64,000 nucleotides of DNA from Penicillus capitatus (GCA_965649825.1 OZ287698.1:1379949-1443948); one strand, 5' to 3'. Shown: positions 2,849 to 40,379, counted from the first letter of the stretch. Program-made: numbers and translations. The notes: a model not told the origin generated them from the sequence alone.

Positions 2849-5800
2849 CTATTTTCCTCCTATCTGTCGATGAAGTGTCTGCACAAAATCCAGATAGCCA
2901 CCCATCGAATGTTTTCGATCTTCGATCAGGAAGGACCACAGATGCTGCTCTTGTTCTGTTCCCAACTGTAAGAGAATAATTGGCTGGTATCCTTTTCGTC
3001 TCTCACGGATGTTTCTAATAAGAGCACAGACTCTCTGTGAAAGCTCATTCTGCTGAGCCGGTTCCACTCTCAGACTGTGGAGAGGCTGCGTCTTGAGCGA
3101 CTGGGGCGGCACACCTGTCAACTTCGATAGAAATTCCAGAGGCACAGAGCCGCCGAACAATAGGAAAATGAGCTGTGATGTGTCCAGCAGGTAGACCCCG
3201 TTAGCTTGCAAAGACTCGTACGAACAAGGCAGCACAGAAGGCAACTCCACCTGAACTGAATCGTTGCATAGAGTGAAGCAATTGACAGCAAATGCACCTC
3301 TTTGTTCTTGGGCATCTTTTCGATGTCTGTAATGTGATAGAGGGTCGGCGAGAGGAGATGTAAGATCCTGTCTATGGTGGAAGCCATGAGCTCAAATCCA
3401 CTTGCAACACGCTCATCGGTCGGCACTTCTGGTCCAGGACCACGAATTGCATGGCATTTTAAGAGGGCCAGAATCCAAAGTGGCAGGTACCGCAGGGTTT
3501 CGGGGAAAATGAGTTGATTTCCACCCCGGAAACTCCTCGAATGCATAATCCTAGACCGATTGATAGCGCTCTTGTACAGAGAGAAGGTAAGAACAGGACG
3601 ATGACCTGTATTCACGTAATCCGGCAATCAGCTTTCCCTCGATCGATTTTTGCACAGCGGAGATTCTTGAACTGTATGTCCTGTCCACCTCAAACTTTGA
3701 CAGAAACGAGATGATGGCAGCAGCATCAGCTCCACGATACAGATCTGGTAGATCATGTGTTACAGGGAATTGCAGAGTGTGGACCCTGTAAGAACATCTG
3801 TCTCTGAGTGATGCATCGTATGGAGGTGCAAACCTGATGCGCCGTTCGCCTGAGGAAGATGTATAGAGCAAGGCACACTGCAGACAGGCTTCATTGCCGT
3901 CCAAAACCATCTCATCGTGCTTTATCTCAACAGCAAATGCCTTGTCTGGATCGCACGTCGGCAAAGACAGCAGATCTGAGGAACGGATAAAGAAATGTCC
4001 ACAGAAAGAGGTGATGTTCAGTCCTGTCGGTCATGACGTAATGCTCACCAAAGAAGGACTAGGTCTATACCTTTGCTGCAGCGTAGTCGCATAACACCTT
4101 CCCATGCTGTATATCGTGTGAGATTTCGCGTAATGTCGTGATGCAATCTGCCCCCGTCTCGTTTCATGATGAAGCCTGGATATCGATAGAGCTGCCAGCA
4201 GACGCATAACGTCACGTCGTTTGTCGATAGAGATATGAGGGTTTGCCTGTCCTCCGGTGTATCTGGGAAGGCAAACGATGGAAGCGAGATCTGTGTATTG
4301 TCCACAGAAAGAGAAGACATCGATGGAGATCTGCACACGACTGCACTCTGCGGCAAATCTCTTGTAGAAGGTATCTTCAGGATTCCTCAGACTGTGTTCT
4401 CTAATGCAGCAGAAAATGAAAAGCTAAGCATTATGGCGAAAAAATGGAGATCACCTGTCTGTATTGTAAACAGCGGCGTTTTCTCTGTTGCGAACGGCGG
4501 CCATTCCGAGGGATGGAGGAGAAGAGAGAAAGAGCTCCATTTTTCCGCCTGTGCTGTTAAGGATCAGAAATGCTGCCTAGAACAATCGACATTGACGCAG
4601 CTTCGGTATGCTTCAGAAAATCACTTGCAGAGCAGCCCCCATGGCGGATTGCTGGTTGTGGTCACTAGCAGAGGCAAAATTCGAAGGCCACGAATCCAGA
4701 AAAGCCTCAATCTTGCTGCGCGCCTCGTCCAACGTCACCAACAGATCATCCGGCTGCGGAAGAAATGGATCATCGATCTCCGGTACCACCAGCATCTTTG
4801 CGTTATCAGATGACTTAAGGTTGTAGAAATGCAAAGTCCTGAAATCACGACAGCAATGACAGAAGGCAACAGAATACGAAAGAACCTGTCAAACGTGAGA
4901 AATCCGATCTTCTTACGATCGTCCCCCTGAATCTTGTCTAACGACTGACGGATAGCTCTAGAGAGAGATGTAAGAACTTCTGAAGACATCTGAGCGACAG
5001 AGACATCCACCACGAAGAGATACACAGCTGGCATTGGTGCTCGGACCTATACAGTATTCCATGTCGTTCGTTCTTTCTGACCTGCTTCAGAATTGTTACC
5101 ATGTATTCTGGAGGCGCGACGTATTCCACGGTACCCTGAGACAGCTCTGGTCTTACGTCTGCATCTCGTCGTGTGCCATCGTCGTTGATCGTGCAAAAGA
5201 ATTCGCGTGGTGTATCCGTCAAGCAGTTGCAGATGTTGCATTTCCATCTGCGTCCTCCATCCACCCATGTCACGAACGGATTGATATATGCTCGGCATCG
5301 ACGACAGCGAAGAATGCCATGCCCCTCCAGCTTGATCACAGGTACATTTCGCTTTTTCTTTCCCTCTGCCAAAGGCTGGATGATCGCGCCGTAGGGTAGC
5401 TGAAAACGTTCCCTAAGCGATCCAGACCGAGGGGCATAGACCGTCGTCATTCTGAGAAAGGAGTGATGCGCGTTTTGCGGGTACGTATCAAGCGGCGGTT
5501 CTGGAGTGATGCCGTTCGGTCGAGGAAGAGATCCTACGTTAGCAATGCCGTCCTGCACTCCTGGTGCCGAAGGAGCAAGCGCGAGAGATTCAAATTTATC
5601 CAACACTTCCTGTCCTGCGCCCTGACATCCATTCACGATGCATACATATCACACGTAGCATTGAAGGATAGACATACGCTCGTAGGGCCAGGAAATGGAG
5701 CAGCAGGGAACGGTGTGTGTCCATGTCCGGTGGATGGCATCGGTGGGGGCGATGGTGCCGGACGAGCAAAGTTCGATGTCATTGTAGTGGGATACATGGG

Positions 5801-6254
5801 CTGAACGTGACCCGGTGGACGTATCCCTCCTCCACCAATCGGTGGCCCATGCGACATGGGAGTAGGAAATGGCGCTGCTGCTGTTGGCTGTAGCGGCTGA
5901 GGTGGTGGCCGAGAGAGATTCGGCTGCGGAGGGCCAAAGGGTGGACGAGGAACAAAGTTCTGCAGCGTAGGCGGCTGTGGTGGCCGCTGTGGAGGTGTGG
6001 GGGTTCTCGGGCCGGGAGCCAATACCATTCCTGAACACACATACCATCTATACACACCTCTTAACTCCTCTGCCTAAGAACCTGGCATCGGAGGACCTCG
6101 TGGAGTCGGAATCGTCGCTTCAGGACGTCCCGAGCTGACCCATGGCGCTGGAAGTGAACCAGTACCCCAATGCGTCGTTTCGGATCAAACGCGTACCTCG
6201 TGGTATTGTTGGCTGTGGTCTCCAGTTCGTCTGCGTCTGTCTCGAGTCCGCCAT
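2849..6254 (-). CDS. SEC24: COPII coat subunit Sec24 (multi-exon)
   Basis: Pro-rich N-terminus, Zn finger (RCRRCRAYINPF...WKCNIC), VWA trunk (PAVYLFVVDVS, IGFLTFD, LHFYNL), beta-sandwich, helical and gelsolin domains. GT-AG introns of 47-56 nt restore the frame, e.g. YM|VRAPMP and FDR|TLHFY. Confidence 0.96.
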
Positions 6255-35277: not shown

Positions 35278-35299
35278 TTTTCTATTGTCTTAACAACAA

Positions 35300-36970
35300 C
35301 TATAGTGCCTTGGCACAGAGCCACTTCTCCTTCTCGTCCTCATCTCTGTAGGGCAACATCCACGTGCCATTCGTCAGCTGCTGTGTACAGCAGGTGTACA
35401 CCGAAGGCAGCTGAATGGTCAGTGCCCCATGGACAAACTCGTATCGCACGAGATGGCGTTCTTTCCATTTGAGGAAGTACTTGGGCGCCAGCAACTGAAA
35501 GAGGTGATCCCGACATTCGTCATTGCTGACCAGTAGACCTTCTCCTCTTGCGTGCAGCGCAGCGTAGAGCCAGTACCAATCGTCGTTGCACTTCACAGGC
35601 GAGACGCATAGTTGATTTGTGTCGGCCATCTTCGACAACAGGGCTTGTGCCAGTGGCTCCTGAGCAGGTGCGTTTGTTGTTCGATAGGAATGCAGGACGA
35701 GCAGGATCTTGCGTTCTGGGAAAGAGCGTTCGAGATACTGCACGAGTGAATGGATCTGTCGGAAACTGAAGGGCCCATATGGACTGTTCTTTTTGTGAAA
35801 GGCCACATTGGCTCCATCGATGACGAGTGGAAAGGGCCCGTGTCTATCCAGCCATTCAACGAAGTCATCAAAGGGCACCTGTCCTTGTTCATTCTTGGAA
35901 GCCAGCTTCTTCACAGCTGCCAAGAACGCGTCCCAGTCTTCATCGGTCAGATCACTCGCCGTCAAGTTCTCTCCGGACGTCAACGAAAATCCATCGCTGT
36001 CGACCGTGACATCCTCCACCAGCCACATCTGTTTGTTGCCCAGGGCCCCGTCCCGAAACGCCTCTTGGGAATGTCGAGACATAAAGTAATTGCGTGCCGT
36101 CTCGATGGTGGCCTTCTCTAGAAAAGTCAATTCCTTTCCTATCTTCTTCAGCAGGATGTCGATCTCTCTGTAGCACCCGTTGGGTTGCGAACACGCTTGA
36201 AGGAGCAATCTGAACTCGAGTTCCGTCAGATCCAATTCAGCGCTCTCTATCACACGTTGCACTTCTAGTGCCTTGTCCATCGCTCCCTGCTCTGCGTAGC
36301 CCACGAGAGCAGGCGTAAATAGACGCAGTCGTGCGGGAAATGTGCTTTCCAGATTCTGCTTGGCAACGGCGAACGCTTCGTCCGGATCGCCCAGACACAC
36401 AGCTATCCGTGCTTGCATAACGAAGACGACATCATCCTTCGGCAGTTTCTGTTCCTGCATATACTCTAGCACTTCGTCTCTGTACTTGCGAAGGTTTTCT
36501 CTGTCGCTGCTGGGCACAGCGTCTGGCTGAAAGGCAGCGAAGGCTCGCTCAAGCCAGTCGTCCCCTCCGACTAAGAGATACAGGATACTATGCACAGCCA
36601 TCTGCGGTAGTTGCAGTCCGGACTTTCGTGCCGTGCGAAATCTCTCTATCGCATCCAGGTAGTCGTTTCTCTTTGCGGCATCGAAGATCAATTTGGTTGT
36701 TTCGTAGGCAGGCCAGTCCTTCTTCTTGCGTCTTCTCTTCTTACGTGTCTCACTCAATTCTTCGTTTGCCGTTTCTTCGACGAGGGTATGCTTGAGTGGG
36801 TTCTTGGCTTCTGTAGGAGGCTGCATGGGCGTTCTCGGCTCGACAGACGACACGATTCGACAGCAGATCTCATTCACTATGATGGGACGTTTGAGCAAAG
36901 CAGACAGCGAGACAGATTTCGAGTGACGAAAGGGATACAAAAAAACACGACCGAAGAAGGCACCCCTCAT
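35300..36970 (-). CDS. PRORP: Proteinaceous RNase P (PPR + NYN metallonuclease), intronless
   Basis: PPR-like repeats (PRLRLF-type), VIDGANVA, NDDWYWLYAA, VSNDECRDH, KWKERH and a C-terminal WLC. Confidence 0.95.
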   Translation of the reverse strand: MRGAFFGRVFLYPFRHSKSVSLSALLKRPIIVNEICCRIVSSVEPRTPMQPPTEAKNPLKHTLVEETANEELSETRKKRRRKKKDWPAYETTKLIFDAAKRNDYLDAIERFRTARKSGLQLPQMAVHSILYLLVGGDDWLERAFAAFQPDAVPSSDRENLRKYRDEVLEYMQEQKLPKDDVVFVMQARIAVCLGDPDEAFAVAKQNLESTFPARLRLFTPALVGYAEQGAMDKALEVQRVIESAELDLTELEFRLLLQACSQPNGCYREIDILLKKIGKELTFLEKATIETARNYFMSRHSQEAFRDGALGNKQMWLVEDVTVDSDGFSLTSGENLTASDLTDEDWDAFLAAVKKLASKNEQGQVPFDDFVEWLDRHGPFPLVIDGANVAFHKKNSPYGPFSFRQIHSLVQYLERSFPERKILLVLHSYRTTNAPAQEPLAQALLSKMADTNQLCVSPVKCNDDWYWLYAALHARGEGLLVSNDECRDHLFQLLAPKYFLKWKERHLVRYEFVHGALTIQLPSVYTCCTQQLTNGTWMLPYRDEDEKEKWLCAKAL

Positions 36971-36976
36971 AGATTG

Positions 36977-37394
36977 CTAGTTAGCCTCCTGGGGTAAGTC
37001 CTGAACAGCACCACTGCCTCAGATGCGTCGATGGATGCAAGAGAAATCACCATAACACTCTTGAAGGGCCTGGTATAGAGCTCGTACACCGTGGACTGGC
37101 GCTTGAGCAGGGCGAGGGCGTCTTCTGCTTTCTGCAGTAGCTGGGCCACCTCGGAGGACGATGTCACACGCGCGTTCTTGCGAAACTCCTCCCGCACGCG
37201 TCTCAGTGCGTACCTACAAATTGACGCCGAATTCAGATCCTCTCTTTGCGACGGCCTGTCCCCACTCGCGAATGTTATACTGCGTGAACCGACTGCCTAA
37301 GACGACAACGCATCGTCGTCGTATGCCGAAGAGACCACAAGGACGTACCTTGTTTGAGGAGCTCTCGATAAAGAGACAACACTTTGCTTGGCAT
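36977..37394 (-). CDS. ISD11: LYR-motif protein ISD11/LYRM4 (cysteine desulfurase partner)
   Basis: Spliced product [39 protein letters not shown]...LKRQSTVYELYTRPFKSVMDLPQEAN; three GT-AG introns. Confidence 0.92.
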
Positions 37395-37472
37395 AACACC
37401 ACGAACGCACATACCCTAGATGTGTCCATGACGCCAAACCCTTGTCATTTATTAAACATATAAGATCTCGAT

Positions 37473-40379
37473 TCATCTCAGTCGTTTGAGAATGTTTTTG
37501 GTGCCGATCTGTTCAAGATCGCGTTGTCTCAGCATCATGACGATGGCATGGCGAACAAGTGAGGCATCGTAGCCCATACGACTGAGATGATCGATGAGAC
37601 GTCCCTCTGAGATACATTCGTTTGGCTGCAATCGTTGTTTCACTTGGTATTCGACTCTCTGGAGCTCTGCTCGTCGTTCCTGGGAAAATTCGACGCCTTC
37701 TGTCAGGCCAGCACGAACCGCATCCATCGTGGAGACTTTGAAGAGCTTGATAGCCATGTCGACATGACGAGCTGTGACATTGGCACTTAGCTGCATTTTG
37801 GCAAAGGCTTCGCTGAGGCGAATCAGAGCCTCTAGCTGACGGATCGTGATGGGGATGGCGACACCGTTACCCATCTCTGCCACTCTTTTCGCCTAGACGT
37901 CACATCAGGCCATCATACAAGGCTTATATAGAAGAGAGTGAGGCCGTACTTCGTCACGCATATTAACGTATTCTTGCTGCAAGATAATGGCGGCTTCTGG
38001 CGAGATGCTTGGCGTCGAGTCCATGCGACAGAACTGTATATAGCGACGCAAGAAATCCACATTCTGCAACGACCGTCCCTCACAAAAGCGACAGTCAGAC
38101 AGATCAGCTACCTGGCTCAACACAGGTATCGTCGTCGCTGCCGTTTGTGGAGAGATGCCCGTCTTGTGGTGATGAATCACATGCCTCAAGGAAGAGAACG
38201 CTGCATCCGACTGGCTCTCGCTATTCGTAAAGAAATCCGCACTTGGCAATTTTTGTGTCTTGTTCTTTGTTTCGAATATCTTTGACAATGAAGATCAGAT
38301 CGAAGCGCGACAAGATGGTGGTCTGCAAGTCGATGTTCTCCTGGGCGGTTTTGAGATCATCGTAGCGGCCTTTGGGTGGATTGGCGGCTGCCAGGACAGA
38401 AGTTCTGGATTTCAGTACGGTACTGATGCCAGCTTTGGCAATAGAGATGGTCTGCTGTTCCATCGCTTCGTGAATGGCAACGCGGTCCTCTGAATGCATC
38501 TTGTCAAATTCATCGATGCAGACCACGCCGTTATCTGCCAATACCATTGCCCCACCCTCCAGATAGAATTCCCGTGTTGAGGGGTCCTGAATGACGGCAG
38601 CCGTCAGTCCTGCAGCACTGGATCCTTTTCCTGAGGTATACACAGCGATCGGCGCCTATAGAGATCTCGGAATCGACCGACAGAAAGGACAGCGGTGCAT
38701 AGACAGACGAACGTACCACTTTGGATGTGAACTTGAGAAATTGAGATTTGGCTGTCGAAGGATCGCCCAAGAGCAACACGTTAACATCACCTCTTCTGTG
38801 GGTCCCATCCTTCATTCTCTGCATCGCATGAATTGGTGATGGGACGTGTGTCTGACAGAGATGCACTTTGCGAATGCCGCCAAACAGGAGACAAGCAATG
38901 GCTTGTTTGATGATGTCGTGGCCGTAGATTTCGGGAGCAAGTGTTTGTTGAATCGTCTCATAGATATCTGGATTCTTAGAAAACTGGAGAAACTTGGTTT
39001 TCTCGTCATCTCTGCCAGACATCATGTCTATGGAGCAGAATAATGCGTCTGGTATTACGTGATACGTGTGATTCCTTGCTGTGTGTATTGCTCATCAGGA
39101 CGCAAACCGACCACTCTGAAGTAAGGATGCCGAACTGTGCTCGCATCTCCCTTCTTGACCTAAAGTTTTCGTCGCCGCGTTCATTTTCGTCACTCTTTCA
39201 GAAAGAGTGAGCGACCTCGTAGACGGAGTAAATGCCGATGGCAACGACTCGGGTCCCTGGCGTCACGCGATCGATCAGATGCCGATCTGCGACCAACATC
39301 ATTCTTCTCGGCAGATCGCCCGGTGGAACATCCTCTGGGCGTTCCTAATCGCACGCGTGCACCGCATTCTTTAGCTGGAGGCATTACCTGAAGCTTCAGC
39401 GTTTGTTGATCGACAAAGCGACTTCGATGCGGCAGAATAACAAAGGGATCCAGTGAGCACTTCTTCTGGCCAATCTGGTAGGCATTGGAACTCAGATTGC
39501 ACGTCCGTGGAAGCAGCGCCGTTCCCAGTCCAGGCTTCATGGTCAGTGTCTGCGTCATCCGGCAGTCCTTGCATTGAATCGTCACGTGCGTTGCCTTCGC
39601 TTTGGGTGTCGCAGCAGCAATGATGATTCCTGGCACCTGTACCAGTTTTGAAATTCGCTGAGACTAAAACGCAAAAGGCGTATGTCAGCTTTGTGGCCTT
39701 AATGACAGACGTGTCGATCCCTCACCGTGAGCGATCGCAGCGACGAGCCCAGAGCTTTGTCACTGAGAGTGGACTTCAGTACGATCTGGATCGATTCCGC
39801 CGCCACTTCGTCGTTTTCTTTCGCTCGGATGTTGTTCGAAATCTCCGTCGCCACTTTCTCAAACTGTCACCACGACCACAACGCTTTCTCGACGGTCGTT
39901 GCATGGTCATGGTAGCCCTGACGGTGGGGAGATGTGTCGAGGGATCGTCTTCCAGTAGACGACGCAGTTTCGGATCGAATTTGCCAACGTCGTTGATATC
40001 GATCTCCAAGTAATCCTTCTTGGCAATGAAGTCGTGGCTGCAGCGGCGAGACAATTGTCGATTAGGCGCACAAGGGTCTGTCTATCTTACCTACCTGTAG
40101 GTTTTGTTTCCTTCGATTTGGAAGGCGCTCAGGAATTCGCGAATACGCAGTTCCAGAAACTGAGTGACGTCTGCCTCTGTATTGGTTCTTTCGCTTCGAA
40201 AGATGGAGACCGAACTCACGCGACCCTCTACGAACACAATGCTTTTGAATACAATCGCCAAACGCTCTTTCCTCGACGTCGGGCACTGATCGATGGCCCA
40301 AGCAACGACGGTCGATGCCGGAGACTGGATCAAGAGTAGCTGTGAACGTGTGTACGTGCTTACCGTCGAATTCTGCCAT
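37473..40379 (-). CDS. MCM5: Replicative helicase subunit MCM5
   Basis: Motifs MAEFD|[12 protein letters not shown], Walker [35 protein letters not shown] and [11 protein letters not shown]. Confidence 0.96.
39190..39210. repeat. Intronic palindrome TCACTCTTTC-A-GAAAGAGTGA (MCM5 intron)
   Basis: Perfect 10-bp inverted repeat inside a 56-nt intron (YE|VKKG). Confidence 0.9.

Follow-up and report, generated by a model that had tools for sequence, protein, structure and literature searches.

The 64,000-nt stretch of the Penicillus capitatus genome analysed in our study (GCA_965649825.1 OZ287698.1:1379949-1443948, referred to as the window) carries on its minus strand two genes in immediate succession, one for the LYR-motif protein ISD11 (LYRM4) and one for PRORP, the protein-only RNase P. 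Gene models were checked directly on the sequence, and coordinates are given in window numbering. ISD11 consists of four exons (37394-37349, 37296-37266, 37213-37051 and 37000-36977) separated by introns of 52, 52 and 50 nt, and its open reading frame (ORF1, 264 nt) encodes a product of 87 amino acids (aa) ending GCT AAC TAG. The first exon, which carries the LYR motif, starts in the context ggtgttATGcc, with G at -3 and C at +4. Exon 3 terminates in the sole internal ATG of the mature ORF1 region, that of Met80 (37053-37051, context gttATGg), and exon 4 adds DLPQEAN and the stop codon TAG (36979-36977); together with Met80 it forms a mini-ORF of 8 codons in the ISD11 frame. Exons 3 and 4 are separated by the phase-0 intron 3 (37001..37050, 50 nt, GT..AG). 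Splicing of this intron is supported by the Caulerpa-like locus L005, which is without intron 3 and encodes the conserved tail M-D-L-P-Q contiguously. Downstream of the ISD11 stop codon a spacer of 6 nt (CAATCT, 36976-36971) leads to the first start codon of PRORP, AUG1 (36970-36968, context caatctATGag, T at -3), which opens an ORF of 556 codons plus TAG (35300..36970). The distance of 6 nt, the common frame and the lone TAG dividing the two ORFs had been pointed out in a first-pass annotation of the window and were confirmed on the sequence.

The ISD11 product matches the Pfam family Complex1_LYR (PF05347, E=1e-20) and has its L-Y-R motif at residues 8-10. Its top four solved relatives are all LYRM4 chains (E=2e-14 to 6e-14), and the next family, represented by chains of human AltMIEF1, follows at E=2e-5. 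Judged from these matches, the upstream gene is ISD11/LYRM4 rather than a member of another LYR subfamily. The downstream ORF matches Pfam PPR_long (residues 78-302) and Pfam PRORP (324-552, the PRORP/NYN nuclease domain) and aligns end to end with Arabidopsis thaliana PRORP1 (4g23, E=8e-63). The acidic residues D385, D463-D464, D484 and D488 of its nuclease domain are invariant in an alignment of 11 sequences. By homology the gene is PRORP, with a predicted activity as protein-only RNase P.

The order and spacing of the two genes in related algae, named as informative in the first-pass annotation, were examined in nine loci of Bryopsidales-type green algae, i.e. the window and eight further loci, for each of which a spliced ISD11 model was built; these nine loci represent eight lineages. 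All nine have ISD11 directly 5' of PRORP and in the same orientation. L002, whose PRORP is 77% identical to that of the window, has the identical 6-nt spacer and also ends ISD11 with TAG. Spacers of 3 nt in L004 (51% PRORP identity, stop codon TGA), -1 nt in L006 (56%, TGA, stop and start overlapping as TGATG) and 14 nt in L005 (51%, TAA) were found as well. The spacer measures 46 nt in L007 (TAA) and 48 nt in L092 (TAG), both with 41-42% PRORP identity, 110 nt in the Bryopsis sp. locus L008 (43%, TGA) and 194 nt in the Ostreobium-like L090 (41%, TGA). The Bryopsis value takes as the PRORP start an in-frame ATG that precedes the annotated one by 312 nt. The PRORP proteins of Caulerpa lentillifera and Ostreobium quekettii are about 50% and 36-39% identical to that of the window, respectively. 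ISD11 intron positions are largely conserved, being shared with L002, L004, L005, L007, L092 and L008; L005 and L006 have no intron at the intron-3 site. In L007 (397-541) ISD11 intron 1 is apparently GC-AG (AAGCAAG / GCAAGG), the other examined ISD11 introns being GT-AG.

A tight tandem order kept in nine loci is not due to chance. Nor does genome compaction explain the linkage, since L007, L092 and L008 have introns of 125-597 nt and intergenic regions on the kb scale, yet keep ISD11 and PRORP within 46, 48 and 110 nt of each other. Upstream of ISD11 in one of the relatives with 51% PRORP identity (L003/L004, 5295-5522) we found a decayed relic of the MCM5 C-terminus with 37% identity and four in-frame stop codons. 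Its position beside an intact ISD11-PRORP indicates that the pair outlived its upstream neighbour. No ISD11-like ORF was detected near PRORP in Coccomyxa or Micractinium, and 79 more distantly related metagenome loci had none at up to 3 kb from PRORP, which argues that the pairing is clade-restricted.

A further property shared by these loci is the scarcity of ATG triplets. From the ISD11 AUG to AUG1 of PRORP (253-460 nt of mature RNA) only one ATG in any frame is present in eight of the nine loci, which span 253-376 nt, and L090 contains two. Pooled over the eight lineages, 9 ATGs were observed compared to 23.9 expected from dinucleotide-preserving shuffles (0 of 5000 as low, P<2e-4). Within ISD11, out-of-frame ATGs are absent altogether (11.7 expected under synonymous recoding, P<2e-4), and this applies to its 5' half (0 versus 7.0 expected, P=0.0002) as well as to its 3' half (0 versus 4.8 expected, P=0.0014). 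The mature PRORP coding sequence, used as a control, contains 190 out-of-frame ATGs versus 160 expected (ratio 1.19), and just 1 of 36 control stretches of 88 codons taken from it was free of them. Expressed as density, the ORF1 region has 0.3-0.4 ATGs per 100 nt versus 2.0-3.3 in mature PRORP. The same depletion signature is described for leaky-scanning bicistrons of Chlamydomonas and Auxenochlorella (PMC11291117). As for the start contexts, the ISD11 AUG is followed by C at +4 in all nine loci and never preceded by A at -3, and the -3 position of AUG1 is a pyrimidine in all nine.

The ATG-poor zone starts only at the ISD11 AUG and does not include the upstream gap. The 78 nt between the MCM5 stop codon (37475-37473, minus strand) and the ISD11 start (37395..37472), presumed to hold the promoter, the transcription start site (TSS) and a very short 5' leader, contain four ATGs in the window, not counting a fifth that overlaps the MCM5 stop codon. 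The nearest one (37412-37410) lies 18 nt 5' of the ISD11 AUG and in frame with it (MCVRGV-MPSK...); in L002 an ATG at 5562-5564, 22 nt 5' of the ISD11 AUG, is not in the ISD11 frame. This means that either the 5' leader measures less than about 18 nt or an upstream ATG is tolerated. The gap is 74% identical to its 87-nt equivalent in L002.

Evidence at the RNA level comes from relatives. L090 and L091, obtained in two sequencing runs from one species, are identical over 2344 nt, and their difference sets in precisely at the conserved intron-2 site: L091 starts with the 3' end of the intron, TTTTTACTTTAG, and L090 instead continues into exon 2. This split indicates that L090 was assembled from spliced RNA. 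The contig extends without a break from 57 nt 5' of ISD11 through the 194-nt spacer and PRORP to 10 nt past the PRORP stop codon. L006 also spans both ORFs and is without all four introns of its relatives (three of ISD11, one of the converging L13 gene); most simply, it would be RNA-derived, too. Regarding single molecules, both are short-read contigs, and their existence is compatible with additional monocistronic forms.

The first-pass annotation had considered the locus to be bicistronic, subject to read-through or the source of a fusion protein. The bicistronic option is well supported by the conserved pair, the ATG depletion over ISD11 and the spliced RNA contig in a relative. We consider it quite probable that a conserved bicistronic nuclear ISD11-PRORP locus is present in bryopsidalean algae, from whose one mRNA two separate proteins would be made by leaky scanning. 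For the window species, we infer a single transcript and leaky scanning from these comparisons. One capped, spliced and polyadenylated mRNA would start a few nt 5' of the ISD11 AUG and end past the PRORP stop codon. Part of the scanning 40S subunits would initiate at the sub-optimal ISD11 AUG, and the remaining ones would leak past it, traverse the nearly AUG-free ORF1 and arrive at AUG1, whose context is weak, too. From there a fraction may proceed through the AUG-poor stretch that follows to a second in-frame start codon of PRORP, AUG2. Initiation at AUG1 would yield PRORP with an organellar presequence, and initiation at AUG2 a form starting just before a cluster resembling a nuclear localization signal (NLS). 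Ribosomes reinitiating after the Met80 mini-ORF may add to PRORP translation or shift it towards AUG2.

Polycistronic nuclear mRNAs are known from Chlamydomonas, Chromochloris and Auxenochlorella (PMC7896298, PMC11291117), and the ISD11-PRORP locus matches these green-algal bicistrons in nearly every feature that can be tested on sequence. In both cases ORF1 is small (about 260-600 nt in the known bicistrons) and the inter-ORF distance is short. Published medians for this distance range from 40 to 260 nt, with 40 nt in Auxenochlorella, where stop and start overlap at some loci (PMC11291117). Shared features are also an own start and stop codon for each ORF, random frames and conserved colinearity. 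The known bicistrons exhibit a depletion of ATG 3-mers 5' of ORF2 and a sub-optimal ORF1 start; the depletion is found at the ISD11-PRORP locus, too, and its ISD11 start context would agree in the C at +4 and the missing A at -3, less so in the G at -3 of five of the nine loci. LYR-motif proteins are recurrent partners in green-algal bicistrons (PMC7896298), and in our locus ORF1 encodes such a protein. Differences concern the taxon, since Ulvophyceae/Bryopsidales are outside the sampling of those surveys, the shared transcript, which is supported indirectly and in relatives only, and ORF2, which appears with two nested starts. The annotation supplement of PMC11291117 does not list the ISD11-PRORP pair. 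We found no report of ISD11-PRORP or of nuclear polycistrons in Bryopsidales/Ulvophyceae; a mention in the supplement of PMC7896298, which lists four LYR subfamilies, is possible.

A functional link between the two proteins through tRNA maturation, as proposed in the first-pass annotation, is speculative. It is also weak, given that algal bicistronic mRNAs often carry LYR-motif proteins in general (PMC7896298); at most, the two proteins can be said to share a mitochondrial destination. Outside the algae, the human MIEF1 mRNA likewise carries a small LYR protein (AltMIEF1/L0R8F8) upstream of a larger mitochondrial protein. The parallel goes no further than analogy, as AltMIEF1 belongs to another LYR subfamily (a mitoribosome assembly factor), the downstream gene is a different one, the organism is an animal and there is no orthology. 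The Drosophila dicistrons stoned and Snapin have an AUG-free first cistron with a non-consensus start and are described as cases of leaky scanning (Wall et al. 2005, as cited in PMC11291117). They differ from the locus in our study in being animal and in comprising unrelated genes with much longer first cistrons.

PRORP itself seems to possess two start codons. In the window, AUG2 (36824..36826, Met49, MQPP...) is a second, conserved in-frame start, and the 48 codons from AUG1 up to it (36827..36970) encode a presequence-like extension with 8 K+R and 2 D+E. The frame from AUG1 to the second in-frame AUG is open in all nine loci over 48-104 codons, and the peptide in between is basic and Ser/Thr-rich with few acidic residues. 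An acidic stretch follows AUG2 and then a K/R cluster, in the window the NLS-like RKKRRRKKK (residues 76-84, 36719..36745); all aligned relatives have a similar basic run. Pooled, the stretch between AUG1 and AUG2 contains 1 out-of-frame ATG compared to 7.0 expected (P=0.002). This sole ATG (window 36873-36871, L002 6098-6100) is kept in the sister locus and absent from the other seven loci. The pattern suggests organellar (AUG1) and nuclear (AUG2) PRORP isoforms produced by continued leaky scanning, the basic cluster having a putative role in nuclear import.

Translation of PRORP from the downstream MQPP start (about 36826) only, which the first-pass annotation had named as part of the refuting case, is unlikely, as the extension is open and presequence-like in nine of nine loci. 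Automatic annotation favours the downstream start: the gene call P0001 of the window (508 aa) begins PRORP at Met49, and the deposited PRORP of Bryopsis sp. KO-2023 (BSYQ01000004.1, L008 3689-4001) begins at AUG2. In the latter, the frame stays open for a further 104 codons 5' of AUG2, with a presequence-like composition, and once this extension is included the distance to the annotated ISD11 shrinks from 422 to 110 nt. Bonnard et al. 2016 (cited in PMC5039416) report for Chlamydomonas a single PRORP that serves the nucleus as well as the mitochondria and the chloroplast. It resembles the window gene in its chlorophyte origin, in its PPR and NYN domains and in that one gene plausibly serves several compartments. 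The presequence-like N-terminus and the NLS-like cluster of the window gene count towards this resemblance, and its putative use of two AUGs is a difference.

In each of the eight loci with Met80, its ATG stands in a strong context (RnnATGG) and opens a mini-ORF of 7-9 codons ending just before AUG1. The position is occupied by Ile in human LYRM4 and in L090, and Met80 may simply be a constrained residue. A more elaborate possibility, which we regard as rather doubtful, is a cascade of starts with three products, namely ISD11, organellar PRORP from AUG1 and nuclear PRORP from AUG2, in which the mini-ORF would act as a reinitiation switch. As only 3-14 nt separate its end from AUG1 in the compact species, terminating ribosomes would be too close to AUG1 and would restart at AUG2, and the availability of ternary complex would set the ratio of organellar to nuclear RNase P. 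GCN4 and ATF4 are examples of such delayed reinitiation. If true, the arrangement would be kept across Bryopsis, Caulerpa-like and Ostreobium-like bryopsidalean lineages.

Several points weigh against a bicistronic mRNA translated by leaky scanning. The strong-context Met80 should intercept leaking ribosomes, so that pure leaky scanning is an incomplete description. The ISD11 AUG has G at -3 in five of nine loci and is not very weak, and both the window and L002 carry an ATG 18-22 nt upstream of it. Both of them also have the out-of-frame ATG between AUG1 and AUG2. The destinations of the two putative PRORP forms are deduced from composition and conservation. Since short-read contigs can merge overlapping transcripts, the evidence from L090 is supportive and not conclusive. 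Finally, the compactness of the genome makes overlapping transcription units expected anyway.

This last point leads to the alternative that ISD11 and PRORP are two separate, overlapping transcription units brought together by compaction, with a PRORP TSS inside ISD11 and an ISD11 poly(A) site inside PRORP. Intergenic spacing was measured at two flanking junctions, and these are tiny as well: 78 nt separate the MCM5 stop codon from the ISD11 ATG, and the converging stop codons of PRORP and of the ribosomal protein L13 gene on the plus strand are 22 nt apart (35278..35299). With introns of about 50 nt, the whole neighbourhood is cramped. In relatives, the PRORP-L13 gap is reduced to 1 nt (L006, 1961-1963), or the two ORFs overlap by 4 nt (L004, 7692-7695). 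Where converging stop codons are so close, the 3' untranslated regions must run antisense into the neighbouring coding regions. The first-pass annotation had stressed that the ISD11-PRORP junction leaves no room for a promoter or a 3' untranslated region; this holds, but it is equally true of the flanking junctions, so that the 6-nt gap alone is not diagnostic. Intron 3, moreover, is unusually conserved and could conceal a promoter element. It is 88% identical to its L002 counterpart (5922-5970), like the exons, versus 75% and 65% for introns 1 and 2; this could hide a regulatory element or mirror the density of splice signals in only 50 nt.

A promoter in intron 3 is not available to L005 and L006, which have no such intron. 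Furthermore, the pair stays 46-194 nt apart in relatives with large introns and intergenic regions, and the spliced RNA contig L090 covers both ORFs. The ATG depletion argues in the same direction, because the first half of ISD11 is as depleted as the second, a pattern for which a PRORP-specific TSS within ISD11 would provide no selection. We therefore judge separate transcription units to be unlikely.

Alternatively, PRORP could be translated from one common mRNA mainly by termination-reinitiation after ISD11 or after the Met80 mini-ORF, as at viral UAAUG/AUGA junctions. The stop-start distances of -1 to 14 nt in the compact clade, with the TGATG overlap of L006, would suit this mechanism, as would the strong-context mini-ORF of 7-9 codons just before AUG1 in eight of nine loci; L090, which is without Met80, has two tiny upstream ORFs in its spacer instead. 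That short upstream ORFs favour reinitiation is established (discussed in PMC11291117). The full ORF1, with 84-88 codons, is long for reinitiation, however, and four lineages have spacers of 46-194 nt. The resemblance to viral UAAUG junctions and to the termination upstream ribosome-binding site (TURBS) is confined to the overlapping TGATG of L006 and the close spacing in the compact clade: in none of the nine loci does UGGGA (TURBS motif 1) occur in the 120 nt preceding AUG1. The fold of the junction is unremarkable (180 nt of mature mRNA, z=+0.89), with no IRES-like (internal ribosome entry site) or other structure. Reinitiation after ISD11 does not predict AUG depletion in ORF1, and mutational tests of bicistrons in Chlamydomonas and Auxenochlorella contradict it (PMC11291117). 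As the main route to PRORP, we regard reinitiation as quite improbable.

An ISD11-PRORP fusion protein, formed either by read-through of the TAG or by use of its AG as an alternative 3' splice site, is the option that fares worst. It draws on the window and L002, where the two ORFs are in frame, CAA follows the TAG and AACTAG followed by C is a possible acceptor; the arithmetic by which splicing to this AG would join the two frames, given in the first-pass annotation, holds. The two ORFs are in frame in only three of eight lineages, i.e. at the chance level of 1 in 3, and the stop codon may be TAG, TGA or TAA. This lack of conservation argues against read-through or fusion. In-frame pairs are at chance level at other algal polycistrons, too (Gallaher et al., PMC7896298). 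The partial similarity of TAG-CAA-TCT to the tobamovirus context UAG-CAR-YYA is correct for TAG-CAA, and the YYA part is unmet even in the window (TCT); the CAA-TCT context is limited to the window and the 77%-identical L002. The alternative acceptor is likewise not kept beyond L002, and L005 and L006 have no intron at this site. A fusion would, in addition, bury the PRORP presequence internally. No LYR domain (PF05347) was found in 50 PRORP homologues, and no relative of ISD11 exon 3 longer than 217 aa was detected among 1.8 billion representatives searched, the 25 significant or closest ones measuring 59-217 aa. This search used exon 3 alone; the full spliced ISD11 gave one uninformative candidate in a word-indexed database. 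With no LYR-PRORP polypeptide among these homologues, we consider fusion or read-through extremely improbable. It is also correct that on retention of intron 3 the ISD11 frame (ORF 36967..37197) ends in a TGA (36969-36967) overlapping the PRORP ATG. In L002 the corresponding frame stops inside the intron, so that this ATGA overlap is not conserved even in the sister locus.

With established nuclear polycistrons in Chlorophyceae and Trebouxiophyceae, a bicistronic ISD11-PRORP mRNA would extend them to the siphonous ulvophytes (Bryopsidales). The deeply conserved pair, with spacers ranging from an overlap to 194 nt, provides a natural series for studying spacing, AUG depletion and start context. 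For annotation the locus is instructive because automatic calls split or truncate it, as for PRORP from Met49 in the window and from AUG2 in Bryopsis. The use of two AUGs, if true, would be a simple account of how one PRORP gene serves several compartments. In synthetic biology, a natural inter-ORF junction of 3-14 nt would be a compact co-expression module.

The remaining observations concern the surroundings of the pair. Rfam and tRNA scans of the window gave no matches, and a naive screen of it for other pairs of a small and a large ORF yielded exon fragments only. Past the ISD11 stop codon neither AATAAA nor TGTAA is found, as the first-pass annotation had noted: the minus strand is free of both from 37453 to 35295. 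On this strand AATAAA and TGT(N0-2)TAA occur only just past the MCM5 and PRORP stop codons, as if bracketing the pair. This argument was dropped, as such motifs lie near only 3 of 33 long-ORF ends in the whole window versus 3.6% at random positions. Evolutionary rates differ sharply among the neighbouring genes: at the protein level, identity between the window and L002 amounts to 98.5% for the MCM5 C-terminus (37476-37883), 85% for ISD11 and 77% for PRORP (35300-36970). L001 and L002, located on contigs of 445 kb and 987 kb of the same assembly (ERZ26696514), carry near-identical MCM5-ISD11-PRORP-VPS9-ACOX blocks with few substitutions. They probably represent two haplotypes, or else closely related strains within the same sample.

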